A program made the translations under genes and the position numbers. The notes beneath the pieces are model-generated. The model saw nothing but the letters and a program-made list of their open reading frames with translations. It did not search any database and was not told the DNA's origin. DNA of 64,000 nucleotides from Cyanophora paradoxa CCMP329 (lineage: Eukaryota > Plantae > Glaucophyta). The DNA lies in assembly GCA_004431415.1 (NCBI GenBank), contig QPMI01000571.1, positions 79,293-143,292 of the forward strand, given 5' to 3'. Of the stretch, positions 5,221 to 61,369 are shown one piece after another; position 1 is the stretch's first letter; each line of letters starts with the position of its first letter.

Positions 5221-5435
5221 GGCTGCGGGCCTGCGACACCTCTGCGGCGATCTTGTCTTCAAAATTCGAGCCGGGTACGAGTTGCTTCGAAAATGATTCG
5301 GCAATAGCTTCGAACTTGCACTATTAGTGATCATAACAGATGACAGATGCGATCTAATGCATTCAGTTCAATTCGATCTCGTGCAGCGAACTAAAGCGGC
5401 AGTAGAGCCTCGCATTCGAGAATTCGAAGTTATAG

Positions 5436-8400
5436 CTACGCCCGGTCCTCGGCAGCCCCGCCCACCCCCTCGGGCCGGGATTCCGCCGCGGCAAGCGGCG
5501 GCGCGGCGGCCGGCGCGAGCGCCTGCTGGGACGCCTGGGATGGGGCCGCCTCGTCGGCCGCGGGGGGCGTCGGCGGGGGCGTGCGCTCCGCCGGGGTGGG
5601 CACTGCCACCGGGGGCGTCGGGGGAGGGGAGGCCACCACCGGCGCGGGCTGCGGCTGCGGCCGGGGCGAGGTGGGGGACTCTGGCGGGGCGATCGGGGCA
5701 GGGGCGGGGGCCCCGCGGCAGCCTGGGCGGGGGCTGGGGGCCAGACGGGTGCGGGGCCAGGGCCTGCGCCGGGCGCGGGGGCGTCTGGGGCGGAGGAAGG
5801 GGCCCGGGCTGATGCGGGGCCCGCCGGGGCCCGGGGGCGGCGGGAGGGCGGGTACGGGGAGACGGAGTGGCCGGCCGCGAAGGGCGGGGGAGGGGGATGG
5901 AGGGGACGCGGGAGGCGGTGGTGTGGGGGGCCCGGGGGGAGACGGGCGGGGCGAAGGGAACGGGGGCGGGGGAGGTGGAGGGGGAGGAGTCGTGGGGCGG
6001 GGTGGCGGAGACGCGCGGGTACCGGTATCGGTGGCGGGGGGCTCTGCAGGGGCGAGTTGGGCCCGGCGGAGGCGCGGGCGGCGCGGCGGGCGGCCGACTC
6101 CGGCAGGACGGCGCGGCGGACGCGCAGCGTGGCCGCCGCAGCGACGACGTTCTTCGAGGGCGAGCCGGGCGGCCCGCCGCCGCCCTCCTCGGCGCCGGCG
6201 CCGGCGGCGGTGCCCAGGCTCGCGCTGGCGCCGCCCGTCGAGACGCGGACGACGCCGGAGGGGCCGGCGGGGCGGCGGGAGGGGACGGCGCCGGCCAGGG
6301 AGGATATGGAGGTGAGGGAGGCGCTGGCGACGAGGCCCGAGCTCCGCGAGAGGGTCACGGAGAAGGTCGGGCGGAGCGGCCGCGCCGCCGGCGCCGCCGA
6401 GCGCCCCGGGCCCGGCGGGGCCCGCGGCGCCGCCGCCGTTGTCGCCGCCGCCGCGGGAGGGGCGGAGGGAGACGGGCCCGAACCCGAGGCCGGGGCCGAG
6501 GCCGGCGGGCGCTGCGGGAGGCGACCGGCGGGGATGTGCCCGGGCCGGGGCGCCGGGGCGGCGGCGGCGAAGGGCGCGAGCAGCGGGCTGCGGGTGCCCA
6601 GCAGGGACTCCAGGCCCCGCCCGACGGCCGGCATGACGCTGCCGAGCACGCCCGTCGCGAGGCTCTGCAGGACGGAGCCGGCGGTGGCGGCCTCGACGGC
6701 GCGGCGGGCGGCCGAGGGCGGGATGGCCTCGGCTCCGGGCGGCGCGTTCTCGTCCTCCTCGCCCTCCTCCGGCAGCTCGGCCGCCTCCTCCAGGCTGTAC
6801 TCCATCATCTCCTCCAGCGAGCCAGGCGCCCGCCCCAGCGCGCCCTCTGAAACAAAGAAGACTGAGACGGAGAGAGAGGAAGAGATGGCGCGGCCGGGGA
6901 AGGGGGCACCGATGCAGCGGCGGGTGAGGGCGAGGACGCGCGGAAAGTCTAGGTACGTCGCCCCCGTCCGCACCTGCCGCCGCGAGGCTGAGCTGAGCCA
7001 GGCGCGCACACACAACTGAGGGCGGGGCGCACCCAGATGCGGTCGAGGACCTGGAAGGCCAGGCAGTAGAGCTCCTCGAAGGCGGAGGGCTGGGGCGGGG
7101 GCCGTGAGCCGAAGCCAAGGCGGAAGAGGAGAAGGTCGCCTGTCACCTGGTCGTAGAGGTGGCAGAAGAACTTGAAGAGGGGCGTCTCCCACGTCGGCAG
7201 GTCCGCCCCGCCGCCGCCGCCGCCGCCCTGCTGCCCCTGCTGCCCCTGCTGGGCGCCGGGCTTCTCCCCGTTGCCGTTGTTGCCCGCTGGGGGCGCCGGC
7301 GCCGGCGAGGCCGCGTGCGGCTGGACCCCGTCGCCCTTGCCGTGCTTCTGGGGCGCTGCGGGCCCGTCGGGGTCAGCGTCGAACGAACCGCACGCGGGCG
7401 GGCGGGCGGGCGGGCGGGCGGGCTCGCCCGAGTCGAGGTGGAGGATCGACGTGAGCATGCGCGTGATGTTGATCCCGGCCGCCGCGAAGGGGTACCCCCG
7501 CTCCGGCTCCGCCGTCAGGACCTCCCGGACGACGGCGGGGTACCTGGAACCGAACCCGTCAGCGAAGCGGAGCAATCAATCGGGGGCAGCTGTCCGAAGC
7601 GCGTACCCCTCCACGAAGTAGACGAGGTTGTGGAGGCCGAGGAGCCCCATACCCCGGAAGTCGGTCGCGGGGTCCATCCCCTGGAAGCCGAGCTTGGACC
7701 ACTGGGCCGAGCGCCGGGCCGTGAGGGCCACCCCGGGGAACGCCGTGCGCCTAATCGGTGAAGTCAGAGGGGCCGCAGAAGGAAGGCTAAGAGGCACCGA
7801 GGAAAGCAAGAAAAGCTCACCAGAGGCGCATTAGGAGGGCCTCATGGTCGGGCCGCTCGGAGCTGTAGGGGACGCGCATGAGCAGCTGGGCCTCCCGCAG
7901 GCGCCGCGCCTGGAAGATCCGGCAGCGGTTGAAGCGCGCCATGTGCGCCCCCAGCAGCTCCATCACCTGTGCGGGGCGGGGCTCGCGAGGCCCGGGCCGG
8001 CGCGCAGCTCAGCGGGGCGCCGCGGACCTCGTGCGGGGCGGAGGTCAGGAACTGGATCTCGCGCCCGTCGCGCCACTCGATGCAGAGGCCCCCGACCTCG
8101 GCGCCCTCGTCCTCCGGAGGCGGCGGCGCCGACGCGGCCTGGGGCGGCGCCAGGTACGAGGGGGACGGGACCTGCAGGCCCAGGCTCGCGGCCGGGCGCG
8201 GGAGCGCCTCCGGCCGGATGCGCTTCACGTCGTCCTGCGCGGGCGCGGGCTCGGACCGGCGGCGGAAGCGGCGGGCGGGGGCAACGGGGAAACGGACGAT
8301 GTAGTGGAGGGACTTGGTGAGGCGGCCGTGCGCGATGAGGAGCTCGTTCTCGACCGGCGGCTCGCCGTAGTGGCCCGCGATGTCCGAGTCGGATAGAACG

Positions 8401-9396: not shown

Positions 9397-12300
9397 CTAA
9401 GATATCGAGCACGCCTTCGAGCCCCCGGCCCCGCCCCCCGCCGCTGCCGCAGCCCGGAGCTCCTCGGCTCTCCTGCGCGCCCGCGCGAGCCGCTCCCGCC
9501 GCTCCGCAGCCGCCCGCTCCAGCGCGGGTATGTCAGAAGCCGCCGGAAGCTGCCCAGCGGCCGCTCCAGGGGCCGCGCGCTGCCCGGCGCCGGTTAGAGA
9601 AGTCGAGGGACGGGACACGCATACGCGGGGCCGCGCACCCCAGCTGATGCCGGGCGGGGCGCCGCCGCCGCCGCCGCCGAGGCCGCTGCCGATGCCGCCA
9701 GGCTCGGCAGGGACTGCACAAGTGCCTCCAAGTTCTGCGGGCGGAGTCAGAGCCGGCGCCGAAGGAGCGGGCACCGGTCGCCAAGCGGGCGGAGGCGCGG
9801 CGCGGGGCGGGCCGATAGGAGGGCCACGTTGCCCTTCGTGATGTAGACGTAGGGCTCCGCGTCCGGGAACAGGCCCTCCAGCACCTGTACGGGGGTACCG
9901 AGTTAGAGTTAGGGGGGTAGAGCGCCCGCTAGACCGGCCGGGGTACGCGCCTGCAGTTCCGAGACCACCACGGGCTTGAGCGGCCGCTTGTTCAGCTCCG
10001 CCAGCTGCCGCGCGGATCAGGAGGGTACCGCGAGGGGCGGAGGGTACGCGCGCCTGGAAGCGGTCCCGGAGAAGAGGGTCCGCGAGGGCGGCGGGGGAGA
10101 GGAGGGGTACGAACGCCGCGCACTGCCGCCGGCCGCGTCAGGCGGGGGGATGAAAGAAACTGGGGGGTATCCGTCCCGAACCTTGACGACGGCTTGTGTG
10201 CCCTCGTCGCCGCTGGCGGCGCCGCCGGCGGACTGCGGGCGCTGGGCGCCGCCGCCGGAGCACTCGAGCCAGCAGCGGCGGCCGCGGTGGGCCAGGCCCC
10301 GCACGAACTGGCCCGCGAAGGCCGCGTCCTGCCCCCGCGCTCCTTCAGAGAGGAGAAGCTTAAGGCGCGGGCTCGAGTGCTGCGGGGCGCGGACCGCGGC
10401 GTGGCACCAGACGAAGAGGAAGGGGGCGGGGTCCGCCAGGGCGCAGCGGGCCCCCGGCGAGGCGAGGAGCGCCGCCGCCGCCTGCGCGAGGGCCTCCTGC
10501 TGGCCCGCGGCGCTTGTCCCGCCGGCGCCGCCCGTGGCGAGGCGCTGGGCGAGGGTGAGGGCGAAGGGCGGCAGGCCCGACGCGAAGAGGGCGTCCCTGC
10601 AGGCGGCGGCGTCAGTTTCGGCGCCGGGGAGGGCGACCCGCGGTGCCTCTGGCGCCGGCGCCGGCTCCGGCGACGCACGTGGAGAGATCTCTGCAGAGCC
10701 GCGGGCGGGCGTCAGGAAGCAGCGGCGCGGGGCGGGGCGGGGCGGAGCGGGTCGGGCGAGGGAGGGCGAAAGGGCGCACGCAAACTGCTGCTTCATGAGC
10801 GCCCCCTTCGCGTGCGAGCGTTGTCAGGAGGTGTGTGCGTGTGTGCGGGGCGAAGGAAGCTTTTAAGGAAGGGGGAGGCGGACCTGCAGCTGGTCGTCGA
10901 GGGCGCACTTCTCGCGCCAGACGGGGTACACGGGCCTCCCCAGGCGCCGGGCGGCAGCCAGCTGCGCCCGGCACCGCGCCGAGGCCGCCCCCGCCGCGCT
11001 GCGCGGCCCCGCCGGCTCAGCGACCGCCGGGTACCCCCCTGAAGCTGAAGAGGGGTACCTGACGACGAAGATGAGGGCCTGGGCCTTGCGGAGGCCGGCC
11101 GCCTCCTGCGAAGCGAACGAAGTCGTCGGCGGCAGATGCGAACGAAGTGATCGGAGCGGAGGGGGCGCACGTCGGCCTCCGTGGCGTCGTCCAGCGCGCA
11201 CTGCGGGGCGAATCCTCAGAACGGGCAAGCGGGTCTATTTATAGAACGGAATTTGATCCGCACGGTGACGTGGGCGGCCTCGAGGCCCTGGAGGAGCCGC
11301 CGGGCGAACGAAGCGTCCTCGGGCGCGTGCCTGCGCGCGGAGGCTGGGGCTCGGGGGGTACACGAGAGAGACAGGGCGGGGTACGCACGAGAAGAAGGCG
11401 TCGCGGAGGCCGCCCGCCCGCTTCAGCGCGGCCTGCGGGGGGCACCGGGGCGTCACGGGGGTACGCTGGAAAGGCGTTAAGGGGTACGCCGGACCTGGAA
11501 GGTGACGTCGGGGTGGGCCTGGACCACCATCCTGCGGCGAGAACGTGAGAGGGGGGGGGGGGACGGCGGGGCTGGCGCGGGGTACAGCGCACTTGCGGTT
11601 CGGCCCCTGCCCGATCGTCCGGGCCGGGTCGGCGCCTGCGCGGGGCCCTCGGCGATGGCGAAGCCATCAAAAATGAGCTCAAAAAGGAGAGGCGTACCCC
11701 GCTGCATGAGGCGGACGCAGACGTCGAGCATGGCGGGGCCGTGCGAGACGGCGTTGAGGAGCGGCGTCCGCTCCTTCCCGTCCGCCGCGCTGCGCCGCGC
11801 GCTCAGGGGAGGCGGAGGGAGGGGCGGGGCGGGGCGGGGCGGGGCGGGGCCGCACTCGAGGGCGGAGGCGGGGGCGGCCTCTGCGAGGCGCAGCGCCGCG
11901 AGGCGGAATCCGTGCCTGCAGCGGCGCCTCAGGCTCGAAACGAACGCTCGCGCGGGCGAGCAGCGTCGGGCTCGCCGGCAGGCGGCGTGGAGCGCGGTCT
12001 CGCCCTCCTCGGGGGCCGCGCCCTGGGCCCCCTCGGGGTCCTCCTCGCCCCCGTCGTCCTCCTCCCCGCTCAGGCGCATGTTGCGGCCCCGGAACTTGCG
12101 CAGCTGAGCGCCGGCCTCAGTTTGAGGTGCGCATCCAAAGGGGTAAAGGTTCGGACCGCGAGGCGACCCTCGAGGGAGAGGACGCGGAGGGCGCCGTTGA
12201 CGAGGGCCCGCATGGCGCCGCCCCGCGGGCCCGAGGCCGCCCCCAGCGCCGGCGCGAAGTCCCCCGTCCAGAAGGTCCCCTCGCAGTGCAGCGCCAGGTC

Positions 12301-15300
12301 CAGGCACGCCCTTCGGGGGGCAAGTTCAACGTTCGGACGGGACGGGGTTGGAAAGGGGCGCCGCGGGGATTCGAACCGGAGCTCCTCGAGGAGGCCGTCC
12401 TTCGCCACCCCCGCGGCCGCCTTCAGGAACCTGCGCGGGCCTTCAGGGGGTACAGGTGCGGACGGCACCGATTCGGATCGCCGCGTACCCCCCCGCCTTG
12501 CCGTAGAGCCGCGGGTCGCGGTGAAGGTTGCGGTGCATGCTGAGCTCCTTGGCCCGCTGCGGTACCCCCCGCAGGACGGGGGGCCGGGGCAGCCCGCCTT
12601 TGCTGTACGCCTCCGTCTCGAGGCGGATCAGGTGCCTGTGAGAGAGTGAGAGGGGTGGGGGCGCGAGGGCGGGGCGGGGCGCGCGATCGGATGGAGACGG
12701 AGCGGGCGGCGCCGAGGGGCGGCATGCCCTCCTCGTTCTGCGCGTCCAGCGAGGCCCCCGCCTGGAGCAGCGCATCCACAAGCAGCGCGCTCCCCTCGTA
12801 GTGCCCGCACGCCCTGCCCCGCCACCCGGCTCAGCCCCGGCCCGGGCGGAAGAGGGGGTTACCGGAAAGAAAGAACGCACTCGTGGAGTGGCTCGCCGCC
12901 CGGCGGCGCGTTTGCGCTGTTTCGCTTCCGCACACAGTCCACCTTGGCGCCGCTGGGTACGCGCATCAAATCTCGAGACGAAGAAGAGCGAAGATAATTC
13001 AGCGGGGGGTACCGTTGGAGGAGAAGGCGAACGGTCGCCAGATCCTCCTCCTTTTTCGCGCCGCCGGCGGTCAGGACCGCCCACGCCAGGGGGGTACCCA
13101 GGTCCAGGACCTCCATGTTCACGTCCGCGCCCTGCCGGGGCCCTTTTCAGAAAGGAAAGGGTAGGAGAGGGGGGTACGGCACCTTGTCGAGGAGCAGCTG
13201 GACGATGGGGAGGGGCCGGGCCTTGCAGTACATCCGGTCCGAGTACCCCGTCCCTGAAGATGGATTCCTTCAGAGGAGGCTGGAGGGGTACGTCTAGTCC
13301 GGGTGTGCAAGGGGGTACCGCACCGTCGTACGGTCCGCAGCCGCAGGCAAGGTGCAGGGGTGAGCCCCAGTAAATCGCCTCGTTGGGATCCGCCCCCGCG
13401 TCCAAAAGCACCCTTGGGGGGGGGGGGGGGGGGGGGGGATGAGCGGCCGGGGTACGGGTCCCTAGTAGGCAGCGGCGCACCGGATGGTCTCGTCGTCGCA
13501 TTTGTAGAGGAACGCCTGCGGGAAAACGGGCGTCTGGTGGGTTCGAACCCGCGCACGGGGAGGGGGCGGGCCTGGGCGAGGAGGCCGTCCGTGGGGGCCC
13601 CCGCGGCCAGCAGCTCCTTCATCGCCGCCGGGTTCCGCAGCGCCGTCTGCGTCGGCGGCCTGCGAACGAAGTCGGTCGGCCGGCGGGGTACAGGCCGGTC
13701 CGGTTCGAGTCTCGTACCCCGGGGCGTCCGAGGCGTCGTCGCCCTCGTTGCGGGGGCAGTTGCCCAGGTCCGGCTTCCGCTCAAGGATTGCCCTGCCCGG
13801 GATCGGACCGGGGTGGGGCGGGGCGGGACGGGGCGGGGCGGGGCGGGGCGGGGCGCACCGGACAACGGCCCCGGAGCTCGAACGCGAGGCGAGGTTCAGG
13901 GCCTGCGGGGGGGGACCGGTTTCTCTTAGAAAAAACCGAAAGGGGTAGGGCGGGATAGAGCGGGGCGGGGGGTACGCGCGCGCCTGCCAGGCGCCCTTGT
14001 TGGCGGCGTGGACGGAGGCGCCGCGGGCCAGCAGCTCGAGGACGACCGCGTCGGGGGCGCCGTGGCTCAGGGCCGCCAGCAGGGGCGTGTTCCCCCGGTC
14101 CCCGTCCTTTGCCTCCAGGTCCGCCCCGGCATCCAGAAGGACCCTGGCCGTGGAGGGGGATGAAGGGGGAAGGGGGGTAGAGGCGCTGAAGGGGGGTACC
14201 GGACGGTCTCGAGGACGTCGCTCTCGAGGAGTGCGCGCGCCGCCGCGTGCAGCGGCTCGTCCCCCTCGGGGGGAGAGCCCCGCCCGAGGCCCAGGACCTC
14301 CCTGTACCCCCCGCCCCGTCGGGCTCCCGCTGTGGCGGAGGGCGAGGGGGGGGCCGGCGGGGGGGTACGCACTTGTCGCAGGAGGCGGCGAGGTGGAGGG
14401 GGGTAAAGCCGGCGCCGGCGCCCCCGACGGGCTTGGAGGGCAGCGAGGGGGGTACGCCCATCTCCAGGAGGGCCCGCACGCAGGCGGGTCGCGCCGACCC
14501 GGCCGCCGCGTGAATTGCGGCGCGGCCCCCCCGCGCGCCCCGCTGCGGACCGGCGTGAGCGGCCTTAGGAGCTGCGCGGCGCCCGCCCCGCCCCGCCCCG
14601 CCCTGCCCCGCGCCACGCGCCTGGTTCCGATTGTTCTGCTGCTTGGGGGCCGCCTTATCGGCCCTGAGCGGCGCCACGAGGCTCACCCCGAGCGCCGCGA
14701 GGACCCTGCCGGCGAACACGCGGTCAGCGAGGCGGCGACTGCGGGCGCGGGAAGGAGGAAGAGGGCGGGAAAGGGGGCCGCCCGCACTTAAGGACGTCGA
14801 CGTGGCCCTCGGAGGCGGCGAGGAGCGCGGCGTAGGGCCCGCGGCCCGCCACGTCGGCGCCCCTCTTCGCGAGCAGCTGGACGCACGCCGCGTGGCCCCG
14901 CTCCGCCGCGAGTTCCAGGGCCGATGCCTGCCCTCGCCGCGTCAGGGACAGGGGGGGTGGAGGAGACAGAGGGGGGGAGCGGGTGCGCGCCGGCTCGAGC
15001 TCGGAGCGCTCGCGGGAGATGACGCCCCGCGCGTTGGCGTCGGCGCCGCGGTCGAGGAGGAGCTCGATGACCTCGGCGTGGCCCCCCGCCGCCGCCTCCA
15101 GCAGGCTCGGCCACGGCCCGTCCGAGCCGCGGCCCCGATCCTCGTCTTCGCCCTCGCGATCGGCCGGCGGCTCCCCGTCCCGGGCGCCGGCCCCGCGATC
15201 CAGGAGGTACCTACAACGCGTGGCGTCACGGTGAATCGGGGCGGTACCCCCCCACGGGGCGCCCGCACCGGACGGCCTCGAGGTGGCCGTAGCGGGCGGC

Positions 15301-16681
15301 GAGGTTCAGGGGCGTCCCGAGCTGCCTCGCGAGGACCCGCACCGGCTCCTTGCGCTCCTCCACGAGGAACCGGAGCACCTCCAGGCGGCCCGCCCCCGCC
15401 GCCCCGTGCAGCGGCAGCGGTCGTTTCGAGACGAGGAGGCCCCCTGGGCCTTCCTTCGGGGCCTCCTCCTCCTCCTCCTCCTCCTCCTCCTCGCCCTCTG
15501 CCCTCGGAGGCTTCTTCGGCTTGCGCTCAAGGAGGTACCTGCGAGGCCGCGGCGCTCGGGAACGGGTTGGGACGGGGCGGGAGGAAGGGCACCGGACGAG
15601 CTCGACGCTGCCGCTCTCGGCGGCGCAGAAGGCGGCGACATGGGCGAGTGGGTGGTAGGCGCCCGCGAAAATCACCGTGTCGCGCTCGTGCTGCGGGCAG
15701 CTCCACGCCCCCTTCTTCCTGCGCTCATCCTCATCTTCCGCCGCCGGAAGCGGCGCCGGCCACGAGTCCAGGAGTAGCCTGCCGGGGCCGGGGCGGGGCG
15801 GGGCGGGCGGGGCGAGCGTGAGGGCCGGTCCGGGGGGGGCAAGACCGTGGGGGCGCCGGGGCCCGGACCGGGTGAGGACGAGGCTGCCGGCGCGGGCGGC
15901 GGCGAGGACGACTCCGGCGTAGCTCCGCGTCGGCCACGCGGCCTGCGAGCGGTACGGCAGCTCGTCATCGAAGCCCTGCCGCCCCGCCAGCAGCCTCCTA
16001 CCGCCGCCCGCGCCCGCGCCCGTCAGCCGCGCCGCCCGCGGCGCCGGCGAAGCCGCGGCGGCGCTCGGCCGCACTTGAGCGCGTCGGCGTCCCCCGTGCT
16101 GGCCGCCTTGTACAGCGCGCACGGCTCGGCGCCGTAGTCGGTGGGCGGCGCCCCGCGGCCGATGAGCAGCCTGCGGGGGCGCGCGCGGGGAAAGCTGAGT
16201 AATCGCAACTCAGGTTTTCTGAGAGATCTCACCTAAGAACTGCCGCGTGCCCGCCGCTGGCTGCGTGCCAGAGCGGCGTGCGGCCGGCCGAGTCTGGAGC
16301 GGTGATGAGGAAGCGCGACTGAGCCCCGCGGTCCAGCAGGAGGCTGCGGAGACAAGGAGCTTAAGTTCGACGTGCAGGCAGCTCGTTAAAGCGCTCAAGG
16401 CGAGTGCAAAGGCCGCGGCTCGCGCTGGCCGCGGGATATCGATCCGGACAAGTCGCACCGGCAGGCATCCACGTCGCCGATAGACGCAGCGTACGCGAGC
16501 GGCTGCACGAGCAGCCGGGCGTCAGACTGCGGCGGCCGTGCGGGGATGCTGAAGGCCGGGTGCGCACGGTTTTGCCGTCGGACGCACGCGCGACGTGCGG
16601 GTCCTTCTGAAGATCGGCACCCTCTGCATACTTGCTCCAGAACGCCGCCAGGCCGCCCTGGGAGCCGAAGCTCGCTCCCAT
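9397..16681 (-). CDS. Ankyrin repeat - TIR - TIR - coiled coil - CaaX protein (paralog A; TIR1 has Gln at the catalytic Glu position)
   Basis: Start MGASFGSQ. ANK motifs: DGKT|PLAYAASIGDVDACR, GRTPLWHAASGGHAAVLR, GTPLNLAARYGHLEAVR, GFTPLHLAASCD, GNTPLLAALSHG, WGSPLHLACG, GETALHAACR. TIR1: DAFFS...EDASFARRLLQGLEAAHVT...LRKAQALIFVV...SARCRAQLAAARRLGRPVYPVW. TIR2: QDAAFAGQFVRGLAHRGRRCWL...CAAFVPLLSPAALADPLLRDRFQ...KRPLKPVVV. Ends LERAAAERRERLARARRRAEEL...SKACSIS*. Confidence 0.85.
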
Positions 16682-16796
16682 GACCTTCCCGAAATTTGAT
16701 CGGAGGCTCGCTTACGGTGTCGGCGGTGTCGCTTGAGCCGGGATACGGATAATTCGGGCGCGGACTGTCCAGGCCCGCACGCGCGCGGCCCAGCAG
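16682..16796. promoter_or_regulatory. Putative bidirectional promoter / shared 5' region of the divergent ANK-TIR pair
   Basis: Only 115 bp separate the minus-strand ATG (16681) from the plus-strand ATG (16797). Confidence 0.6.
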
Positions 16797-19700
16797 ATGG
16801 CTGGAGAGATGGACCAGGATGCGGCCGACGAGGCGCTTATCTTGGCCGCTGCTGCCGGGGACGTTCGCTCGATAAGGTGCGCCCGCCTGCGCTTGCGAAT
16901 GCGTGCGCTTACAGCCGCCGCCGAGCTCGGGCGTGTCTAGTGCATAGAGATGAGCTCACGTGCTTTGCAGAGACCTCCTCTCGCGGGGGGCTTCCCCGAA
17001 CGCGTTTTCGAGGCGGCCGCTGAAGCGAGCGGACGGCAAGGCGATCCCTGTTGGCCGTTCCGCGCTGCATGAGGCGGCGCAAGTCGGGCATGTAGAAGCG
17101 CTGCGGTATGCCCGCTTGCGGCCGCCGCGCGGGATCTCTTCAAGTTCTGCGCAGGCGCTGACTTTTGATCTTTCTCCGCTTGCAGCACGCTGCTCGACGC
17201 GCCGCACGCCGACGCGAACTCGCGCTACATCGCCGGCCCCGATCAGTCTCGGGACCCGGGCCCCGCGCCGCTAGACATGGCGGCGGCGGCGAACCGCCCG
17301 GCGGCCGTGCAGCTCCTGCTCGACCGCGGCGCCGACGGGCTGCAGGGTGCCCTTTTCGGCGCCGTACGGGCCAATTCCGACACGGGGGACGCCGTGCGGT
17401 ACGCTTCGGAGGCCCTCGCTGCGCCCGCGGGCCGCCGACGAACACGCGGGCGGGCGCAGGTTGCTGCTCGAGCGCGGGGCGAAGGCGGGAGAGAGGGAGT
17501 TAAGCTATGCTGCACAGGCGGGGAATGCGGGGGCCCTCCGGTGCGGTCGGCCCGCCCCGCCCCGCCCCATCGCCGCCGCCGCCGCCTCACGGAGGTCTAA
17601 CGGGCGCAGGGCGGTCCTGGGAGCGATGCCGGCGGGCGAGGCGCGAACGAAGGCGATCGAATCCTGCGGCTTCTCGGCGGCCCGCGGCGGCAGCGGCGAG
17701 GTCGTACGGCGCGCCGTACCCCCCCTTTCCCCCCCCCCCCTCCGCCTGCCCGCCCCCCTCCGCCTGCCCGCCCTCGTCGGTTCAGGCCCTGACCGGCCCT
17801 CCAGACTCCTAGCGGCGGCGGGTATGCCTCCGGAAGGGGAGATCTCCCGGGACGGGTACACGTTCGTGGGGCTCGCCGCCGTCGAAGGGAAGCTCGAGAC
17901 CGTCACGTGCGATCCGCCCCCCGCCCCCCGCCCCCCCCCCCCCCCCCGCCCCGCCCCCCCCCCGTTCCCCCCTCGCGGCTCGCTGGGCCGGGCCGAGCGG
18001 ATACGGGTACGGGCCGCAGGGCTCTCGTGGAGATGGGCGCGAGGATCGCCGGCATCGTCGTACCCGGGGCCAAGGGCGGCCCCCGCCCCGACGTCATCTC
18101 CTGGGCCGCCGAAGGGGGCGATCCCGCCGTGATCCGGTGCGCGCCGGACCGGCGGTCCCATAAACTTAGCACGCCGGCCCAGCTGAGCGCCGGGCCGATC
18201 AGGTACCTCCTCTCGCGCGGGGCGGACCTGGAGGCGCGGGACGGGGAGGGGATGACCCCGCTCCTGAAGGCGGCCGCCTGCGGGCACGGCCCCGCCGTCG
18301 AGGCCCTCGCCGATGCCGGCGCCGACGTCGCCGCCCGCGAGACGGGGCCCTACGGGGCGCCCCTGCCCGAGGGCCGGGCGGCCCGCGGCGTGCCGGACTT
18401 GGCCCCGGCGCTCTCGCACCCCGGCGTCCTGCGGCTCCTGGGGGCCCGCGGCATCCCCTACGACCTCGCCGCGCAGGAGTCCGTCTTCGTCCGGGGCGCC
18501 TTCCCGATCGTCCGCCAGAAGGCCCGCCCGCGTGCCCTCACTTAAGCTTCGAGTCTTAAGCTTTTAGCTAAATCTTCAACTGAGCTGTACGGCAGTTGAT
18601 GCGGACGCCGCTGGGGCACGCCGCCAAGCGCGGGGACGCCGAAGCCGTCCGGTGCGCCCCGCCCCCGCCTCCCGACCCCTTCATCTTCGCCTCGCCTCCG
18701 GTCCCGCTTCATCCGCGCTCAGGGCGCTGCTGGCGGCGGGGGCGGACCCGAACGTCCCCGCGACGCTCATCCAGTGGAGCATGCGCCGCGAGGAGTCTCA
18801 GTGCGCTCGCCTCGTCCCGGCGCCCGTTAGTCCCTTTAGTTTCGACCGAATCGGGTGCTATGAGCTTCCGGATGCCAATGCCCCAACCCCTTCTGGCCCG
18901 CCGTGGGGAGGCTCACGCGCGCCGCTGATACGGGCCGGGGGCGCAGGCACCCGTCCTCTACCCCCCTCCACGACGCAGCCAGCGACGGCTTCTCCGACGT
19001 CGTTCGGTGCGCCGTACCCCCTCTCCCGCTGCCCCCGCCCGCCCGCCGGCGAGCGAGCGTGCGGGCGCTGCCGCAGGCTGCTGGTGGCGGGCGGGGCGGA
19101 CATGGCGGCGCGCCACGCGGGCAGGCGGCCCCTGGAAGCCGCCATCGCCGCGGGCCGCACCGACGCCGCCCGGTGCCTTCCTCCCGCTCCCGCCCTCCTC
19201 CTAGCCTTTTTTATCACATCTAACCGCCCTCTAATCTAAACGCGCTTGCTACCAGGGCGCTCCTGGAGCTCGGCTGCCCCGTGGACGACGCGGCATACGC
19301 GGCGGAGGAGGAGGGGCAGAGGGCGCCCGAGGCCGCGCTGCCCCTCGCCGCCGAGCGCGGCGACCTCGAGCTCGTCCGGTGCGCAGTCTCCCTCTGAAGA
19401 GGCCGGGGCGCCATCTCTCTTTCTAGCCTGTCTTTCTGTCTGTCTGAGCTGCTGGGGCCAGGGAGCTGCTGGCGCGGGGCGCCTCGCCGGGGGCGCGGCA
19501 CGGGCACAAGGCGGGGCCCTACGAGCTGGCCGCCCTGGGCGGCCACTTCGAAGTCCTCCGGTAAATCTTTGGGCCGCCTCTCTCTCTCTCTTTCTGAGGG
19601 GAGGCGGGCGGGCGGGCAGGGAGTTGGTGGCGAGGGCGGCGCCCCCCGCGGAGGTCGTCGAGGGCATCGCGGCGGGCGCCGCGCGCGAGGGCTCGGCCGC

Positions 19701-22700
19701 CTGCCTCCGCGTCGCCCTGGACGCCGGCGCCGACCCGCGGCGGCGCGTGAAGGAGAACAGCGCGTGGCTCACGCCGCTGCTGATGGCGGCGGGCAACGGG
19801 CACCTCGGCTGCGTGCGGGAGCTGCTGGAGAGGGGGGCGGACCCCGGCGAGGTCGAGGGGGTGCCCCCGCCCAGGCGCACGCCGGAGCAGGAGGAGGAGG
19901 ACGAGGCGGAGGGGCGGCCGCCCCCGCCCGAGTACGTGCTGGCGGGCTACTCGGCGCTGGAGCGGGCGGCGCGGGGCGGCCACGCGGCGGTGGTCCGCCT
20001 CCTCGCCTCGCGCGGGGCGCCCGTCGACCGCCCGGACTCCGGCCTCAACAGCGCCCTCGGTCAGTGCCCGGCCCCCTGCGCCCCCGGCCCGGCCCTCGAA
20101 CCGACGTCGGCGTCGACCCCCAATCTGGGCAGGCCTCGCGGCGAAGGAGGGGCGCCTGGAGGCCGTGCGGGCCCTCCTGCAGTGCGGGGCCGACCCCGCG
20201 AACCCGAAGGCGCGTACACGTACCCCCCTCGCGATCGGCGGCGCGCAGACCGCCCTGACGCGCGCGGACCGGTACCCCGGCAGGCCCTGAAAGCAAGCGG
20301 CGTGCTGGACTCGGCGTGGTGCCCCGCCCTGCACGCCGCCGCGTTCAACTTCGACATACCCTCCGTCCGGTGCGCCGTCCGAGCCGTCTTTGCCGCCTGA
20401 GCGTCCGAGCCGCCGTCTGACCCGAGAGAGAAGGGCGCTGCTGGAGGCGGGGGCGCCGATAAACCAGGCGGACGCGTCGAACCGGACGCCCATCATGCGG
20501 CCGCTCGCCTCGAGCGCCCGCGAGAAGGAGCCTCTGATGCTCAAGACCCTGCAGTGCTTTGATTTGTCTAGATCTCCTCTTGTTATCGTTAGTCTCGTTC
20601 CTCTTTGTTCGTTCGGCCCACGCCGCCCTCGCAGGGAGCTTCTGCGGGCGGGGGCCGACCCCTTCTACGGCTGGCAGGACAAGTGCACCATCGAGCAGAA
20701 CCTCCTCTACCAGGTTCGAGCCCCGTCGGGGCCCCTTTCTCTTCGTTCTCACCCGGCCGCAGGTCTCGGGCATGTACACGAAAAACCGCCTCACCATCCT
20801 CGCGTGCGTACCCGTACCCCCTCCCACCCCCTCCCCTGCCTTTCGCGCCATACCCAGGCCTGCATCACCGTACCCAGGGCGCTGGAGGAGGCGGGGCTGC
20901 GGCTGCCGACGCGGCACCCCGCCGTGGCTCAGGCGCTCGCCTTCGCACTCGCGCGCGGCGTCTACTCCGTCGCCAGGTCCGCGTACCCCTCCCCAGCCCC
21001 GCCTTCGCCTCGCTTGAGCTTCCGACGCCTTCCGCGCAGGTGGTTCCTGGAGCGAAAGGTCGACACGAACCTCGCGTACCTCTCTGACGAGGAGCGCGGC
21101 GGGCCCCACATCCGAGCGCGCCCCGGGCCCCTCCCCACTTTTAGATGAGATTCTGAGATTCTGCGGGGCAGGGCGAGACGCTCCTGCACAAGCTCCTGAT
21201 GGGCCGGCGCGAGCACGGCGAGTCCGCGGAGGACTTCGACGCCTGCCTCCGGTGCGCGCCCCGCCGGCCGGCCCGCTCGCTGGCCTGGCCTGCCCGGGCC
21301 TTGGGCGACGTCGACCGGCGCCTGCGCCTGCAGGCTGATCCTCGACAACGGGGCGGACGTCAACGAGTACTGCGAGGGCTCCTCCCGTGCGCACGCGCGC
21401 GCGCCCCGCCCTCACGCCTCTGCGCGGCTTGAGCACGCCGCCGCCTCCGCAGCGCTGCACCTTGCGGCGGGCAACGCGGAGGCGGGGGCCGAGACCGTCC
21501 GGTGCGCCCTTCCCTTGCGTCGCGCCCGTCGGTTCTTCTGCGTGCATCCGCCCCTCACGCCCCTCTCGCAGCTTCCTGATCGAGCGGGGCGCGGCGCTGG
21601 AGGCGAAGGACGCGGAGAATGACGAGGAGGGGAGGGGCCGCGGCCGCGGCCGGGGCGAGGCCCGCGGGCGGACGCCGCTGCTCGTCGCCGTCGCCGCGAG
21701 CAAGGGCGAGGATGGCCTCGAGACGGTCCGGGCGCTGCTCGACGCCGGCGCCGACATCGGCGCGCGCGACGCGGAGGGCCGGAGCGCCGCGGCGATCGCG
21801 GCGGCGGCCGCCGACCTCGAGCTGCTGCGGCTGCTGATGGGCCGCGGGGCCGGGCGCCACGCGCACGAGGGCGAGATCGTCGCTGCCGCCTGCGGCTCGG
21901 GCGGCGGCGGGCGGTACCGCCGCGGCCCCGAGACCCGCGACATCCTCGGGTGTGCCCTAGGCCTGTTCTCATCCCGTCCCGTACCCCTCTGAAACCCTCC
22001 CCCGGCCCCAGGGTCCTGCTGGAGGACGAGCTGAAGGAGGTCTCGGCGGAGGGCTTCGCCTGGCCCGCCGTCCGCCGCGACGCCGACGGCAGCCTCTCCG
22101 GCCGCGCCAAAGGGTGCCCGCCGCCCTGGCCCCCACGCTTTGCGCCCTCTCTGAAGCTCGCGGCGGGAAGGTACTCGACGGCGCTGGGGGAGGCGATGCG
22201 GGACGGGTCCGAGATGGCGGCCGAGGACGCCCGCCAGTGGGCCGACCTCCTCCTCTGCTGCCGCGGCCCGATACGCCTCAGGCGAGCGCGCAGGAAAGCT
22301 AGAGGGTGCCGCTGGCTGACGGCGCCGCAGCGAGATCCACGCGCTGAAGCCGGAGGAGACGGGCGGGGACGCGCGGGGGCCGCTGGTGGCGGCGGCGGCG
22401 CGCGTGCTGCGGCTCGAGGGCCGCGTCGAGCCGGAGCCGCCCGAGGACCCCAAGAAGAAGACGAAGAAGAAAGCAAAGTGCGCCCTCGCTTCGGTTCCTG
22501 TCATTGCCGGCGTACGCTGAGCGGGCCCGTGCCGGGCGGGCGGGGCTGCAGGGGCCAGGAGGACGAGGAGGAGGAGGCGGAGCAGGAGGACCCCGCCGAG
22601 GCGGACGCGCGGGACCGGGAGACGCCGCTGCACGCCGCCTGCCGCGTCGGCCTCCGCCTCACGGCCCTCCGCCTCGCCGCCGCCGCCACCCCGGAGACCG

Positions 22701-25533
22701 TCGAGTGCGCTATGTGTATAGCTCAGGCTAGTCTAACTAACTGAACCTCTCTCGCCCAACTTAGACCAGCCTACCTAGCTTAGGCTAGGCCAACCGGACC
22801 TCTCGCCCAACTTGGCCTCGCTGGGCCCCCCGCGCAGCGCGGTGGACGCGGCGGAGGAGACGGCCCTCTCGCGGGCCGTCGCCTTCGGGCCCGCCCTCTT
22901 CGACGTCTGCGCCCTCCTCCTCCAGAAGGGCGCGCGAGCCCCGCTTCTCGAAATTATTTGATATCGCCTTTCTTTCGCTGGATCTGAGCGGCTCCGCTGC
23001 TGCTGCGCAGGGGCGGACATCGGGCGGCAGGTCGGCGGGGCCGACGGCGGGAAGCAGCGGTGCGCCCCGAGACCTCTACTGCTAGGAACGAGCCCAAGAA
23101 ATCCCTCCTCAACGGCTCCGGCAGGGCTGTGCTGGACGGGACGCGGGACGCGGCGTACCGCGCGCAGCTGAAGCGCGCCGCCGCCGTCCGCGACGCCTTC
23201 ATCTCGTGCGTATCCCCCTCTCATTTCCCTCCCCCTCCGCTTTTCCTTCTCTTCCTGAGCCCCCGCCCGCGCTGCGCGCGCGCAGGTACGGGCACCACCC
23301 GCCGGAGGTGGCGCGGTTCACGGCGCAGCTGAGGGACCGCCTCCAGGCCGAGCAGGTCTCGGTCCGTCCTCCTTCCGCTTTCTCTTCCGCCGTCCCCTCG
23401 CCCCGTCTCCCCACTCGACTCGGCCTCACTCCGCCCCGCACGCGCCCCCCGCGACCCTCGCCCCCGCAGTGCTGGGTGCGCCTTTGTTTCAATCCGCTCC
23501 TCCGCCCCCGTTCCGAGGCTGACGCGCGCTGCCCGCCGCCAGATGGACGAAATGAAGGCGACGGGTACGCGATGCGATTCGCAGTTGGCTTCGCCCCTGA
23601 CCTCGAGTTCGCTCCGCCCCGCGGCCGGCAGGCATCGAGGCCGGAACGGAGGCGCGCGCCCCGGCGCCTCCGCAACGCCCTCTAAGGCGCCCCTGAAAGC
23701 CGCGCGCAGTGGCGGGAGCAGATCGGGGCGGGGATCAAGGCGGCCCGCGCCGTCCTCTTCGTCGCCTCCAAGGCGGGCGCCGCGCCGCGCCCCCTCCCCC
23801 GCCTCTTCCGCTTCTGATCGCAGCGCCCTCCTCCCGCAGCACTCGTGCGCGTCGGACTGGTGCATGCTCGAGCTCTCCCGCGCCCGCGGTGCGCCCTCCC
23901 TGCGGCCTGGACCTCTTCGTTCTCAGCGCCCCCAGACCTGGGGCGACCGATCTTCCCCGTGTGGGCCGAGGCGCCCTTCCCCCTCGACGACCGCCCCGCC
24001 GTGCGCGTGTACCCCCTCCCCGCCGCCCCTCCTCACAGTACCCCCCGCAGGGCCTCCTCCGCGGCTGCCGCATCGTCGACCTCTCGCGGTGCCCCCGCCC
24101 CGCCCGGCCCAATCCAAGCCTCCCCGGCCTGAGCGCCGCCCCGGTCCGGCGCAGGCCGGCGCTGCTGGAGGCGGGCTTCCCCGCCTTCCTCGCGGAGGTG
24201 CGGGGCGCCCTCGAGGCCGCCGCCGCCGCCGACGACGCCGCCGACGCCGACGCCGCCCGGGCCCGCCCCTCACCCCTCACCTTCCCCGCTCTTCCCTCCT
24301 CATTTCTGAGCCGTGCGCAGGCGCTGCTGGCGCGGCCCGAGGCGCGCTGCGACCCCCGGCGGGCCCCCTTCCTGCTCGCCTGGGCCCTGCCCGAGGACGC
24401 CCGCAACGCCGCCTCCCTCCTCTCTGCCCTCGCCTTCCGCGGCGTGCCCTGTTGGCTCCACTGCCCTGTACCCACACCCCCCGTCCTCCCCCACCCACCC
24501 TCGCATCTTCCCTCACAGCCGCGCAGGGCGCGGACCCGACGGGAGAGGCGGGGGCGGACGCTGCGCTGGCGGCGTGCGCGGCCTTCGTGCCGCTCCTCTC
24601 GCCCGCCTCCGCCTCCTCCCCCCTCCTCCGCGACCGCCTCCAGGCCCGCCCGCCCCTGCGCTCGGCCTTTCTGTCGCCTCACTGTGCCCCCGCTTCGCAG
24701 CGCGCGCGGGCGGCGGGGCGGCCCGTCCGGCCCCTCCTCCTCTCCAGCCTCCAGGCGAGCGCGCCCCCCGCCCCGCCCCGTCTGAAGCTTAGGCCGCCCC
24801 GCCGGACAGGTGCCGGCGTCGCTCGAGTACTCGCTGGCGCGAACGCGCAAGTTCCCCTTCTTCGCCGAAGAGCCCGAGGGCTTCTTCCCGGTGCCGTACC
24901 CCCGCCTTCCTCCCCCCCCCCCCCCCCCCCTTCATCTTCTTCCGACCTCGCCGGCAGTCCCTCGACGCGCTGCTCTCGTCCCTGGGGGCACCGGCCCCCG
25001 CCGCCCCGGTCCGCCCGCCCCGCCCCGCCCGGCCCTCCCTACAAGCCTCTCGCCCTGCAGCTGACGCCCCGCCGCGGCGCAGGCGAAGCCAGAGGGTCCG
25101 CCCGCGCTGCACGCCCCCGCCACGTCGGCTGGAGGCGCCGCCCCGTCGGCCCTGGACGCGGTGCGCCCACAGGCGCCGCCCGCCGCGCGCAGGGCTCACG
25201 CGGCGCAGGCGCGGGCGGGGGTGCTGCAGGCGGAGATCGCCGGCAGCGACCGCGAGCTCGAGCAGGCGCGCGCCCCCCCGCCGGCCCCGCCGCGGGGCCC
25301 CGCCCCTCTCCCTAAGCGAGAGAGATCGCGCGCAGCTGGAGCGGGAGATCGCGGAGCTGGAGGCGGCCGCCGCCCGCGGCTCGCGGCGGGGGAAGAGGGG
25401 CAAGGGCTCGAGTTCGAAGGCCGCCCCGCCGCCCCTGCCGGCGCCCCCGCCCCTGGACCCCCCCGGGGCCGCCCCGGCCGCCCCGCCCCGCAAGAGGGAC
25501 CACGGCAAGAGCGGCGCCTGCTCCCTGATGTGA
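16797..25533 (+). CDS. Ankyrin repeat - TIR - TIR - coiled coil - CaaX protein (paralog B; TIR1 retains the catalytic Glu)
   Basis: MAGEMDQDAADEALILAAAAGDVRSIR|DLLSRGASPN...GRSALHEAAQVGHVEALR. Many ANK repeats (GMTPLLKAAACGHGPAVEAL, LTPLLMAAGNGHLGCVRELL, GRTPLLVAV, RETPLHAACR). TIR1: DAFIS|YGHHPPEVARFTAQLRDRLQAEQVS|CW|MDE...WREQIGAGIKAARAVLFVASK|HSCASDWCMLELSRAR|LGRPIFPVW (Glu codon 23870-23872). TIR2: ...GVPCWL...CAAFVPLLSPASASSPLLRDRLQ|RARAAGRPVRPLLL. Tail LQAEIAGSDRELEQ|LEREIAELEA...GKSGACSLM* (TGA 25531-25533). Confidence 0.88.
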
Positions 25534-26037
25534 GGGCTCGCGCGCGGTCGGACCCGCCGCGGGTTCTACTGTTATACGATTTATTGTAATTACGGATACG
25601 TATTGCACACGTACGAATTATATTCACGCTTCAAATTAAATGGGGCTCTGGTGGCCGCGCCGTACCCATATCCCCGGCCAGTCCCTCGGCTTGCAGTGCC
25701 TCTGGCGGCAGTGCCCGCTCCGGCGGTGCCCCCTTCGCGGCCGGCCACTCTGTCTCTCCTGTACCCGCCATCCCGCCGCCCCCGCGCCCCGGCGCATGCC
25801 CCAGCCCCGCATGCGCAGCCGTCTGACCCGTCGTGGAGTCGCACGCCGACGCCGCCGGCGTTAGTGCACGCCTCGACCGACGAGGCGGCCCAGGCATGCG
25901 CACCTCCAGAACATGAAATGCGCCAGTCCTTTCATATGCATAGTGACGTCTTCGCTCCCACACGCACACTTTTCATTTCTTTCCTTTCCCGGTTGAAAAG
26001 GCAAATCAACGAAAAATCAACGGCCTTTGTTGAACAA

Positions 26038-29000
26038 TTACATAAATATCGTTCGATGATCGTTTTGATTGCTCTCCCCCTCACCGATGGGGGCTGCATC
26101 TGGAGCCGCCGGACGCATTCGCTCCTCCAAATTGCTGATGTCATATGTGCATGTATATCCGTCGACGTCGACGTCGACGCTCTTGGGTAGAGTTGCCGTC
26201 CGGGCATGCGCACCAGCTGCAGCTTCACTTTTGCAGCTGCGGCGCCGGCGACGAAGGACGTATACGATAACACCAGCTACAATGGCAAGAACACCGACGC
26301 CACCAGCTACGCCGCCAGCGATGACTGGTAAAGAAACTGATCCGGATTGACCGGTCACGGATGAAGTACTGGCACTAGAACTCGCATCGTTGCCTGCAAT
26401 GGTCTCCTGTACACCTGCTTTGTTCAATCAATTCAGCGATGCATATGATTCGAATTTCGTGCGCGAGCCGATCAAATGCAATTGAAATGAATATTGCTCA
26501 CTTTCGAACAGGAGAGCGGTTTGTTCTAGACTCTTGATTTCCCATGGGAGCTCGGCCGCTAGAACAAGAATGCCGGTCGTTTCCATACTCTTCAAAAGTT
26601 TCGCCGCTTCGGTTGGTCGCAGTGCTACGCTTCGGTAAGGTTGCGAATGGTGCTGCGTAACAAACAATTGCAATTGCGAAGTCCGAAGCTTACCAGATGT
26701 GCTTCCCAGGCCAGGGCTGTGAAGCAGGGAGAATGTCACTGCAGTTGGAAAGATTTCGATGGCGGCTTTCGCAGTTCGATGCCGATTCCTCGAGCTTCTT
26801 GAGCTTGCCTCCATCCTAGTGACCATCACTTTGACATGTACAGAGCTGGTACCGTAGTCGAGTGCGATGGCCTTCTCAAGACCGGCAGTGAAGGTCGAAG
26901 TTTTCGCTTGGTCCCATGCCGCGAAATCGATGTCGAGAACCGCCGTCATGCTTACCCCTCGAACGCGTTTGCCTGTCCCTGGGTCCTTTTCAAGTTCGAG
27001 GCTGGACTCGGCTGTCCTCTGGATGAAGACGGTGAAGACAAAAGAGGCACTGTCCGTCGCCCCCGTGGAATCGTCTCGAGCTGTAACCATGAATGTTGCT
27101 GTCGTGTACTGAGCTGACGCGCATCTGGAGTCGGTGCCGTAGGCAGAAGAGACACGAACAGAAACGACGCCCGTATCCGGAAATATGGACACGCTATTGC
27201 CTTCAGCACACGGCTCCAAAGACTGCAGTTTCACGACGAAATATCGGATTTTAGCCTTCGATCTTTTTTGTCTTCCGTAGCTCGCAGCGACAAGCCCGTA
27301 TACGTAAGTAGCACTGCTGGGCTGAGCAGAGTTCGTGATGACGGCTAGTTGCGAGGATAAGCGAAAGCCTTCGTAGCCGACGCATGCAGGGTATGCTCTC
27401 AATGGATCCTGACATAGACTCTCACACGTAAATGCGGGACAATCCTCTGGTAGACACAAGCAGGGGGGCAAGCCCCCCCGCACCCCCCCATTAACTGATG
27501 ATCGATATCATGACCGTCGGACATAGCTATAGCGATCGCACGCGAATTCGAAAGAAACTTACACGCAGAAATGAATTTTTTCGCGATCTGGAATTCGAAG
27601 CATGTATACGTAGATCTAGATCTGCAGCTGAACTTCAATCCAATCGAGAAACGCGCAGCGTTGACCGTCGGACGTCAGCGCCATACGCGTCGCGTCGGCC
27701 GCGCCGACCTCGATCTAGACTCTCAGATCTTGAGCTTCGGAAGCGGAGCTATAAGATCTAGCGATAGATCGGAACTGTCCCAATTAGCTATTATATATTT
27801 CGAATCTTGCGCAGTTTGCCAGAACGACCGTCGGACGGACGTTGTCAGGACAAAAGAATTCGAATAATCTTCGCGGCCGCCGGGCACTTCACGATCCGGA
27901 GCGGGTGCTTATAAGCAGCGGCTTCGACAAAATCAGGATCACTGCTTTCGCGATCGCAATCGCTGCGTTGACTTCGAATTCACCTGCTGATGCGCCGCAG
28001 TGCTCCGTCTGCACAAGCATGCGCAGCAGCGCTAGCTACATGCGCAGCAGCACTAGTATGTACGCGGTTGCTAATATAAGCGCAACTGCAGCAACGACAG
28101 CTGCTGCTGCTGCTCATGAATCATGATCAGCGGGCCTGCAGCTAGACGTCGACTGCAGTGTGTTTCGGTTACTTTCCGTTACTTTTCGCTATCCGCCACT
28201 TAAGCTGTCCGTTACTTTCCGGAAACGTCCGTTATAATTATCCCGGGCCCGCCACTTTCCGTTACTTCCGTTATCTGCCACTTTCCATGCACGCCACTGG
28301 CCAGCTTAAACTGCTGGGAAAAACTCGACTCACGCGACAGTCGCGCGGCTCGCGCCACGCCGTGACGTCGACGGCGCCGCGTGGCGGCAGCCACGGCCAG
28401 CGCGCGCCGCAGGCCCGCAGCGCGCCGCTAGCGCTAGCGCTGCGCGCGCGGCGCTACCGGTACCCGCGGTGACACACTGTGACACGTCAACCTGAGTGAA
28501 GGAAAATCCGGTACGTCCGATCGGATCGAACTGGTAGTAGTAGTCTGGTACTGGCGAAGGCCGAGGGGTACCGGATCGTCGATCGGATCGATTCGATTTT
28601 AATTTGTTTTATAGAAGTTGCCCGACAGCTCACTGAAAGAGTCCTAGTCAAAGTCGACGTCGCGGCCCGGGCTCGCGATTGCGACGTCGCGATCGGCTCA
28701 ATCATTTGAATTTGCGAGCACGTGCACGTAGCGTAGTACTACGATCGCGTCCGCAGTTGACTCCGCACGCACTGCGGCATTTGGCGCGCACTACGACTGC
28801 GAATCCATGTGGCATGCATTAAATTTCTTTAAAACCCAATTAAACTGGAACCGGTTTTCGATCGATCGATTTCGATCCGCGCGCGGCTGGGCAAAATTAA
28901 AATTGCGGTTTTTAAATTAAATTAACGTGCTGACATTTTGAGTTTAGTTTCACTTGGGGTAATGTGTCTGGCGTTATCGCAGCAGATTTTCGAGAATAAG

Positions 29001-30114
29001 CGCGGTACCTAACTGTAAATCTGAAGTCAAAATTTAATTTGTGATTCTGATGTAATTTACGTTATGCCACACTGTGTTCTCATATGCGTTGACACAACCC
29101 TAAGGTAAGTTTTCTGACCTCAATCAAACTACCGAGGATTTTTGGCTCGGCCGTCCCGTGAAGACTGAGTTTTTTTACGGGTGTCCGCATGCGTCATAAG
29201 TAATAAGTTATAACTTAGTATTCCTTTCGAATTCTTCCCAGCAAGCACTCGCAGAAGCCTGTGCGAATGTTTTAACTGGGCTCTTGGGAGGCATGCGAGA
29301 TTTAGATCTGTGCTTGCGCACCTGCAGTACCACGAGGAATGAGCTCGGTGCCTGTCTGTTGTCGAATCGTCCCAGATACAGGCTCCGAGGTCGCGCAAGC
29401 ATCAGTTCCATTCCAGCACCATTTCTGCGAGCGTTTGCATCCACCGAGCCCGATTGGTCTCGCTATAGCTGTAGGCGTGTGCGCAGGTGAAGGGCCCGGG
29501 GTAGCAATGGGGCGAAGTGTGATTGCTGGGGGTGAAGGCGACACAACATGATCTGTTGGTGAAGGGCGAGCGGTTGGCGAAGGAATTGCTGTCGGCGATG
29601 CGGTCGGAAACGGCGATGCAGCGGTTGTCGGTGAAGGGGAAGGTGAAGGTGAAGGAGTAGCTGTAGGAAACACTGTGCATGTGGGCAAAGGAGATCTAAC
29701 GATAGCCGAAACTGCGATCGCAGATTTACATAATTATTATAAGGCTGTACATGTGATCATCATGAATCCAATTTAAACACCTTCGCCTTTGAATCTGTAT
29801 TGCGCTGAGAACCCTTTGCCCGGGTCCACGCCGTATGTATAAAAAACCACGAGGAGTGCGCTAGACGTCTGAGAAGTGACAAAAGACGTCCTGCTCAAGG
29901 ACGCCATTTGCCCGTTCAGTCTCGCTAGAGCTGCGTCTGGCAAGTAGTAACTTCTCACATACTGATAGGGGCATGTCACTGCCGCGCCATCGTACAACTG
30001 CGTAGCACTCGGATCAGAAATGCTAACGAGATAGGTGACCGTCATCAATATCGCGCGCGCCAACGCCGCCAGCTCTTGCGCATGCTGCACCGACTGGCTC
30101 GCCGCCGGCGCCAC
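26038..30114 (-). pseudogene. Single-pass membrane receptor-like gene (CUB - Pro/Ser/Thr stalk - Cys-rich - cadherin-like - SEA-like - TM - tail), interrupted by an insertion and possibly 5'-truncated
   Basis: CUB C-terminal half LYDG...LARLNG...FVTSQTSSALLVVFYT...GKGFSAQY; stalk TATPSPSPSPSPTT; CLCLPEDCPAFTCESLCQ; cadherin-like SIFPDTGVVSV...TATFMVTARDDSTGATDSASFVFTV; TM LPVIAGGVAGGVGVLAIVAGVIVYVL followed by RRRRR. Lower GC than neighbouring genes. No signal peptide or CUB N-terminal half seen. Confidence 0.65.
27496..28920. mobile_element. ~1.43-kb non-coding insertion flanked by a 6-bp direct repeat ATTAAC
   Basis: ATTAAC at 27490-27495 and 28921-28926. Removing the insert plus one copy restores the minus-strand frame ...VKLNSKCQHVN-GGVRGGLPPCLC.... 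No terminal inverted repeats visible. Confidence 0.55.
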
Positions 30115-61350: not shown

Positions 61351-61369
61351 CAATTGCGGTACATATGCA

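Follow-up and report, generated by a model that had tools for sequence, protein, structure and literature searches.

A head-to-head pair of ankyrin–TIR–TIR–CaaX genes from a recurrently paired family in Cyanophora paradoxa: candidate paired receptors with one putatively live and three apparently dead TIR domains

Do two divergently oriented ankyrin–TIR genes, only 115 bp apart in the genome of the glaucophyte Cyanophora paradoxa, work as a pair, and might such a pair serve innate immunity? The question was raised by an earlier note, made from the sequence alone, on a window of 64,000 nucleotides (the whole stretch of DNA analysed here, whose positions are used throughout). Gene A runs from its ATG at 16681 to its stop at 9397 on the minus strand, and gene B from its ATG at 16797 to its stop at 25533 on the plus strand; both genes are GC-rich and intron-dense. 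The public Cyanophora paradoxa models (EukProt EP00741) tig00021178_g19209 (P0008, 1523 amino acids; gene A, the dead-type member) and tig00021178_g19210 (P0012, 1752 amino acids; gene B, the live-type member) agree with the window at every residue once spliced onto it. This exact mapping confirmed the two divergent multi-exon genes and the gap (16682–16796) between their start codons, and the paired genes are real.

The public models contain 41 introns in A and 48 in B, of the type G[TC]..AG and with a median length of 63–69 nt. Three in-frame stretches of the models bear splice signals. The two in A (10329–10394 and 14543–14620) are probably retained introns, which would bring its true intron count to 43, and the one in B (24261–24320) is probably another. 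Only 204 bp separate the A stop from the next likely ATG; tight gene spacing is the local norm, so the short A–B gap by itself says little. To the left of the pair lies a gene with an ELMO/CED-12 domain (about 5363–7800, minus strand; Pfam E 1e-10), and to its right, past an abrupt GC step at about 26000, a low-GC gene (50–55%; about 26038–30000, minus strand) that encodes one membrane-like helix close to its end and matches no Pfam family.

Transcription was followed in RNA-like runs from two studies, with RNA contigs aligned to about 6 kb of the window (10950–16940). Gene A is spliced in contigs of both studies: the 14 RNA joints listed (three runs) all match introns of the A model and are absent from the DNA run. 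In runs X3 and X7 a single contig carries all of these joints, from the ankyrin exons (13717) to the inside of TIR1 (11329), which speaks against the possibility, raised by the earlier note against itself, that the ankyrin and TIR parts of A are separate transcripts. For gene B, a fraction of 0.33–0.37 of its words was present in seven RNA-like runs of the two studies, which would be about the level expected of an intron-less B transcript. Both genes are thus expressed, A as judged by spliced contigs and B by the word content of RNA-like runs. Furthermore, a contig of A extends to 16742 and a 2.7-kb contig of B has its first base at 16738; between them the 5′ UTRs of both genes cover the whole gap and meet, with the reservation that contig ends are not start sites and that contigs carry no start site, strand or level.

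Both proteins follow the same order: ankyrin array, helical insert, two to three last ankyrins, TIR1, TIR2, coiled coil and CaaX box. In A, read on the minus strand, the N-terminal array (12635–16606; alpha type) comes after a Met-Gly N-terminus that is a weak candidate for myristoylation (position 6 is Gly here and Ser in the paralogue g10180). It is followed by a helical non-ankyrin insert (12098–12634), the last-ankyrin block (11622–12007; common to the whole family and 56% identical to that of B), TIR1 (10530–11408), a degenerate TIR2 (9708–10427), a short coiled-coil-like helix (9445–9528) and, in sequence, the CaaX box CSIS (9400–9411). In B, on the plus strand, the corresponding parts are an array of the beta type (16821–22012), the insert (22013–22436; 34% to that of A), the last-ankyrin block (22613–23024), a canonical TIR_2 domain as TIR1 (23186–24224), a degenerate TIR2 (24363–24987), the coiled-coil-like helix (25218–25383) and the CaaX box CSLM, preceded by basic residues (25519–25530). 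The insert is found family-wide and is confidently modelled as helical (pLDDT about 90), with no Pfam family and no clear fold match. The CaaX box is kept in nine family models, which include A, B and in-between types, and CSIS and CSLM are the candidate prenylation sites of A and B.

The layout shared by the two proteins was therefore largely as first described, including the TIR2 motif common to both (located at 10122 in A and 24575 in B) and the absence of NB-ARC: no NB-ARC or STAND NTPase domain was matched by Pfam in either protein. The description had passed over the helical insert and the conserved last-ankyrin block in front of TIR1, and it had taken the first TIR of A to be intact, although this domain is degenerate too. 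The coiled coil was recognised in both proteins as a helix by pattern only, and is short, at about four heptads.

Pfam matches to Ank are numerous in both proteins, and each has two stretches that match TIR_2. The E-values are 5e-18 for TIR1 of B, 1.9e-10 for TIR1 of A and about 5e-4 for both TIR2 domains, which places TIR1 of both proteins above the TIR_2 cut-off and TIR2 of both, taken alone, below it; single short exons searched in Pfam gave no TIR match. In AlphaFold models, the closest fold to TIR1 of B is the SARM1 TIR (Z 15.2, rmsd 2.2), TIR1 of A matches Hydra TRR-2 (Z 16.1) and SARM1 (Z 15.5), and TIR2 of B matches PdTIR at Z 10.1. The assignment of the C-terminal domains to the TIR fold consequently stands for both TIR1 domains and for TIR2 of B, while for TIR2 of A it extends to TIR-like secondary structure only.

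Only one of the four TIRs, TIR1 of B, has the BB loop (23473–23730), the Trp (23858) and the catalytic Glu (23870–23872). Its Trp and Glu align with those of AbTir, and it matches bacterial TIR NADases of solved structure at E 0.003–0.009. In TIR1 of A the BB-loop motif is lost, Arg replaces the Trp (10974–10976) and Gln the catalytic Glu (10962–10964), and both TIR2 domains carry Arg at the Glu position (10060–10062 in A; 24635–24637 in B). By their residues, three of the four TIRs in the pair look dead, and TIR1 of B is the sole candidate NAD+ hydrolase among them. A retained Glu is not proof of NADase activity: TirB and TirD of Dictyostelium have it, yet no activity was seen in either (PMC13142454). 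Across the family, the TIR1 core has a mean identity of 81% in B-type genes, with Trp and Glu invariant, and of 55% in A-type genes, where the BB loop is lost and the Glu position reads Q/Q/E/H/E/A. In the alpha-D/E region the order is reversed (65% in A-type against 54% in B-type), and A-type genes have conserved TIR2 motifs specific to their own clade. A weak TIR1 core beside a conserved alpha-D/E region and conserved TIR2 motifs argues for a selective loss of the catalytic face in A rather than for decay.

The pair belongs to a family with 17 public models found, all from C. paradoxa. A profile of two single-frame stretches of the window, searched against 1.84 billion representatives, gave six relatives. 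Outside C. paradoxa none appeared among strong protein matches, and none was found in metagenome or viral contigs, both of which are weak blanks; atlas searches yielded generic ankyrin or unrelated clusters only. Known members can escape these searches, as P0005 did in one of them. In a tree built on the linker plus the TIRs, rooted at the midpoint only, six genes form the A clade (support 100/100) and six the B clade (100/99, with three near-copies excluded). Two further genes, g11412 and g9371, sit between these clades; they share the domain layout of A and B, their TIR1 keeps the catalytic features seen in B, and some of their alpha-D/E and TIR2 residues are as in A, so that in sequence they resemble what a pre-duplication form would look like.

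Consecutive gene numbers place A and B genes next to each other on four contigs (g19209/10, g10180/81, g21701/02 and g22379/78): every one of the four full-length A-type genes has a B neighbour and none an A neighbour. A fifth contig holds fragments of both types, g13842 (B) and g13848 (A), and no partner was found for g2243 (B) and g587 (A). Both members of the window pair are closely related to their counterparts in g10180/81 (65% and 63%). In the tree, the two genes of a pair do not cluster with one another, which indicates that whole pairs were duplicated and that partners were not regenerated locally. The proposal of an old, maintained pair is supported by a dead and a live clade with one member of each adjoining on four contigs.

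Some of the public models are wrong, and an artefact, in which mis-joined models or redundant assembly copies make both family and pairing, has to be weighed at this point. The g22378 model (P0018) continues into pyrroline-5-carboxylate reductase, probably an annotation fusion of two genes that hides the true C-terminus, the models of g10958 and g18418 are frameshifted, and three near-copies of B exist. Nevertheless, the window genes map exactly, the RNA joints agree with them, and the four pairs differ by 35–50% and thus cannot be haplotypes. For the window pair this explanation is largely refuted, and overall it is extremely improbable.

The near-copies are g18416, g18418 and g10958 (P0013, P0014 and P0002). 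They were ruled out as independent unpaired B genes, being 5′-truncated recent copies of window B with a common foreign leader fused at about residue 480 of B. The end of g18418 is identical to 25713–25823 of the window. They are possibly gene pieces on a mobile element, or assembly redundancy. The window itself contains further repeated material. A stray copy of the last exons of B with its CaaX box lies at 30617–31010 (plus strand; 88–94% identical to 25157–25538), its C-terminus resembling the public model g18416. At 61282–61351 (plus strand), 70 bp are 96% identical to the end of an intron and the start of an exon of B (17154–17223), and adjoin a repeated element that starts at 61370. This element (61370–64000) is related to another at 39347–47072 (85% over 1.8 kb), each being followed by a 139-bp tandem array (about 11 and 42 copies, respectively). 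Moreover, a 282-bp direct repeat, 99.6% identical, occurs at 31393–31674 and 59352–59633, 28 kb apart, and could represent terminal repeats, and a 64-bp inverted match (92%; 25731–25794 against 5884–5822) flanks the pair on both sides.

A toxin–antidote or self/non-self incompatibility unit, in which the product of the linked gene A neutralises a toxic NADase, B, and the two spread together, would account for the close linkage, the combination of a live with a dead partner, the copying as a unit and the pieces of B that moved recently. The genes are, however, very large and intron-rich, with long arrays; the divergence between pairs is old (about 50–65%), and the window shows no sign of whole-pair mobility. 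This explanation is accordingly held to be quite unlikely.

The ankyrin arrays have a history of their own. The N-terminal arrays of A and B in the window are no closer to each other than to unrelated ankyrin proteins (block-shuffle z 1.8), in agreement with the strong divergence already noticed in them. Between older paralogues, array identity is 33% or less, a divergence far faster than that of the TIR block. The B array is colinear with that of g21701 over about 900 residues (260 bits, z 13–14) and shows a weaker similarity to that of g22379 (z 8–12), against 32–40 bits and z up to 7 in controls. Both g21701 and g22379 are dead-type TIR genes, so the beta array accompanies live TIRs in two pairs and dead ones in another two, and array type is not tied to TIR type in the sequences of these pairs. 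The reciprocal arrangement, an alpha array on live TIRs, was at control level for g21702 and gave no score for g22378; the mosaicism is thus seen in one direction only, from beta array onto dead TIRs.

A possible route for the exchange lies in the last-ankyrin block. Between g21701 and g21702, 66 residues of this block are 91% identical, with 29–35% on each side, while other A–B comparisons of the block give 46–64%; window A and B show no recent conversion tract, and a tree of the helical insert gave no resolution. In any pair laid out head to head the block would form an inverted repeat, and a crossover within it would flip the centre of the pair, swapping the arrays and leaving both genes intact.

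These observations bear on whether the partners need each other. The linkage could be historical: one inverted duplication would have created a pair that is kept by a shared promoter in a compact genome while each protein works on its own, B being a self-sufficient NADase receptor and A a scaffold, similar to MyD88, for further TIR proteins of this genome. Overlapping 5′ UTRs would make separation hard, the same layout in the single-type genes g11412 and g9371 indicates that a partner is not structurally required, and g2243 and g587 appear alone, although missing partners are uninformative given that the searches overlook known members. Set against this, all four full-length A-type genes found adjoin B and never A, the loss in A is restricted to the catalytic face, and arrays changed TIR type without either gene being lost. 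We consider historical linkage improbable, and the separate roles for B and A equally so.

The interpretation we lean towards, at slightly less than an even chance, is by analogy with plant paired TNLs lacking NB-ARC: a prenyl-anchored heterocomplex in which B is the NADase and A its restraint. The two genes would form a co-transcribed module whose products assemble on the membrane, held there by two prenyl anchors. Enzymatic activity would reside in TIR1 of B alone, which would hydrolyse NAD+ in the manner of SARM1 and AbTir and depend on TIR–TIR assembly, and the TIRs of A together with both TIR2 domains would provide non-catalytic surfaces that restrain or position it. When the ankyrin arrays bound a ligand, for which a viral or bacterial (non-self) one is the most likely, the complex would rearrange and release TIR1 of B to assemble and cut NAD+, leading to a signal or to cell death. 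The module would have arisen by inverted duplication of a one-gene ancestor, with later copying as a unit and exchange of arrays through the common last-ankyrin block. The mixing of array and TIR types is in keeping with a complex that functions as a whole, whichever chain bears which array, and speaks against one dedicated sensor. Of the sensor/executor pair first proposed, pair maintenance and catalytic asymmetry are supported, but the plain form in which A senses and B executes is weakened.

Many proteins without an immune role also carry ankyrin arrays or CaaX boxes, which counts against this interpretation. A and B might instead form a functional pair for non-immune signalling, a membrane-bound NAD+ hydrolase gated by metabolites or stress with a regulatory partner, comparable to metabolite-gated SARM1. 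The pairing and the catalytic residues fit this explanation too, and transcription of both genes in several runs of two studies and the very strong conservation of TIR1 in B are in keeping with it. On the other hand, fast-diverging arrays and a one-lineage expansion with broken copies, both observed here, are more typical of non-self recognition genes, which leaves a non-immune role with a small share of the probability. The full version of the favoured heterocomplex, in which a glaucophyte independently evolved NTPase-free paired intracellular immune receptors, prenylated, with a single live TIR beside three dead ones, having arisen from still-existing single-gene ancestors and diversified by centre inversions that hand arrays between TIR modules, is put forward only tentatively.

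Should A and B prove to function together, the division into sensor and executor known from plants would have arisen separately in an early-branching archaeplastid, without the NB-ARC switch thought central to plant immunity. Putative single-gene ancestors, pairs that differ in age and a route for recombination between partners all occur in the same genome, which makes the transition from singleton to pair directly testable. The pair may likewise give access to the way in which a free-living alga detects non-self.

The gene pair is real, expressed and recurrent, and apparently undescribed: a literature search that covered few subscription journals found no description of the Cyanophora family. 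Ankyrin repeat–TIR proteins are mentioned, uncharacterised, in oomycetes (PMC9153377), so that the ankyrin–TIR combination, which the earlier note did not know from a described family, has been noted before; on the full architecture no paper was found. Like A and B, the oomycete proteins combine ankyrins and TIR without a nucleotide-binding domain; no report was found of a second TIR, a CaaX box or live/dead pairing in them, and none was among the homologue-search matches. Dictyostelium TirE has repeats and two diverged tandem TIRs (PMC13142454). A and B share this plan, except that the repeats of TirE are RCC1. In animals, BCAP and BANK1 combine TIR, ankyrin and coiled coil, in the reverse domain order and with a scaffold role. 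To our knowledge, neither TirE nor BCAP/BANK1 is a paired locus. Unlike Toll-like receptors, A and B have no ectodomain or transmembrane helix, no signal-like or membrane-spanning stretch being seen by inspection in P0008 or P0012. The bacterial TIR NADases AbTir, PdTIR, Cat1 and ThsB are sequence relatives of TIR1 of B, with Trp and Glu aligned, but are small or differently fused, and no system context accompanies TIR1 of B here. SARM1/TIR-1, the best structural match to TIR1 of B, likewise places repeats upstream of a C-terminal TIR with a Trp-x-x-x-Glu helix. By Pfam neither A nor B has its ARM-SAM-SAM-TIR order; they carry ankyrins and the helical insert in place of ARM-SAM-SAM, an extra pseudo-TIR, two genes and a predicted prenyl anchor (mitochondrial in SARM1).

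From the plant pairs RRS1/RPS4 and CHS3/CSA1 they differ in having no NB-ARC and no LRR, ankyrin arrays at the N-terminus, C-terminal TIRs that are doubled and of the bacterial/animal type TIR_2, CaaX anchors and arrays exchanged between partners; no integrated decoy domain was identified, and the helical insert, without a family, sits in both partners. With these same pairs they share head-to-head genes on a shared promoter region (115 bp in the window pair, where the 5′ contigs meet) and one putatively catalytic plus one degenerate TIR partner. In plant paired TNLs, sensors have a shortened BB loop and a variable or missing Glu while the executor TIR is catalytically conserved, and head-to-head layout combined with TIR divergence has been proposed as a proxy for such pairs (PMC13725568).
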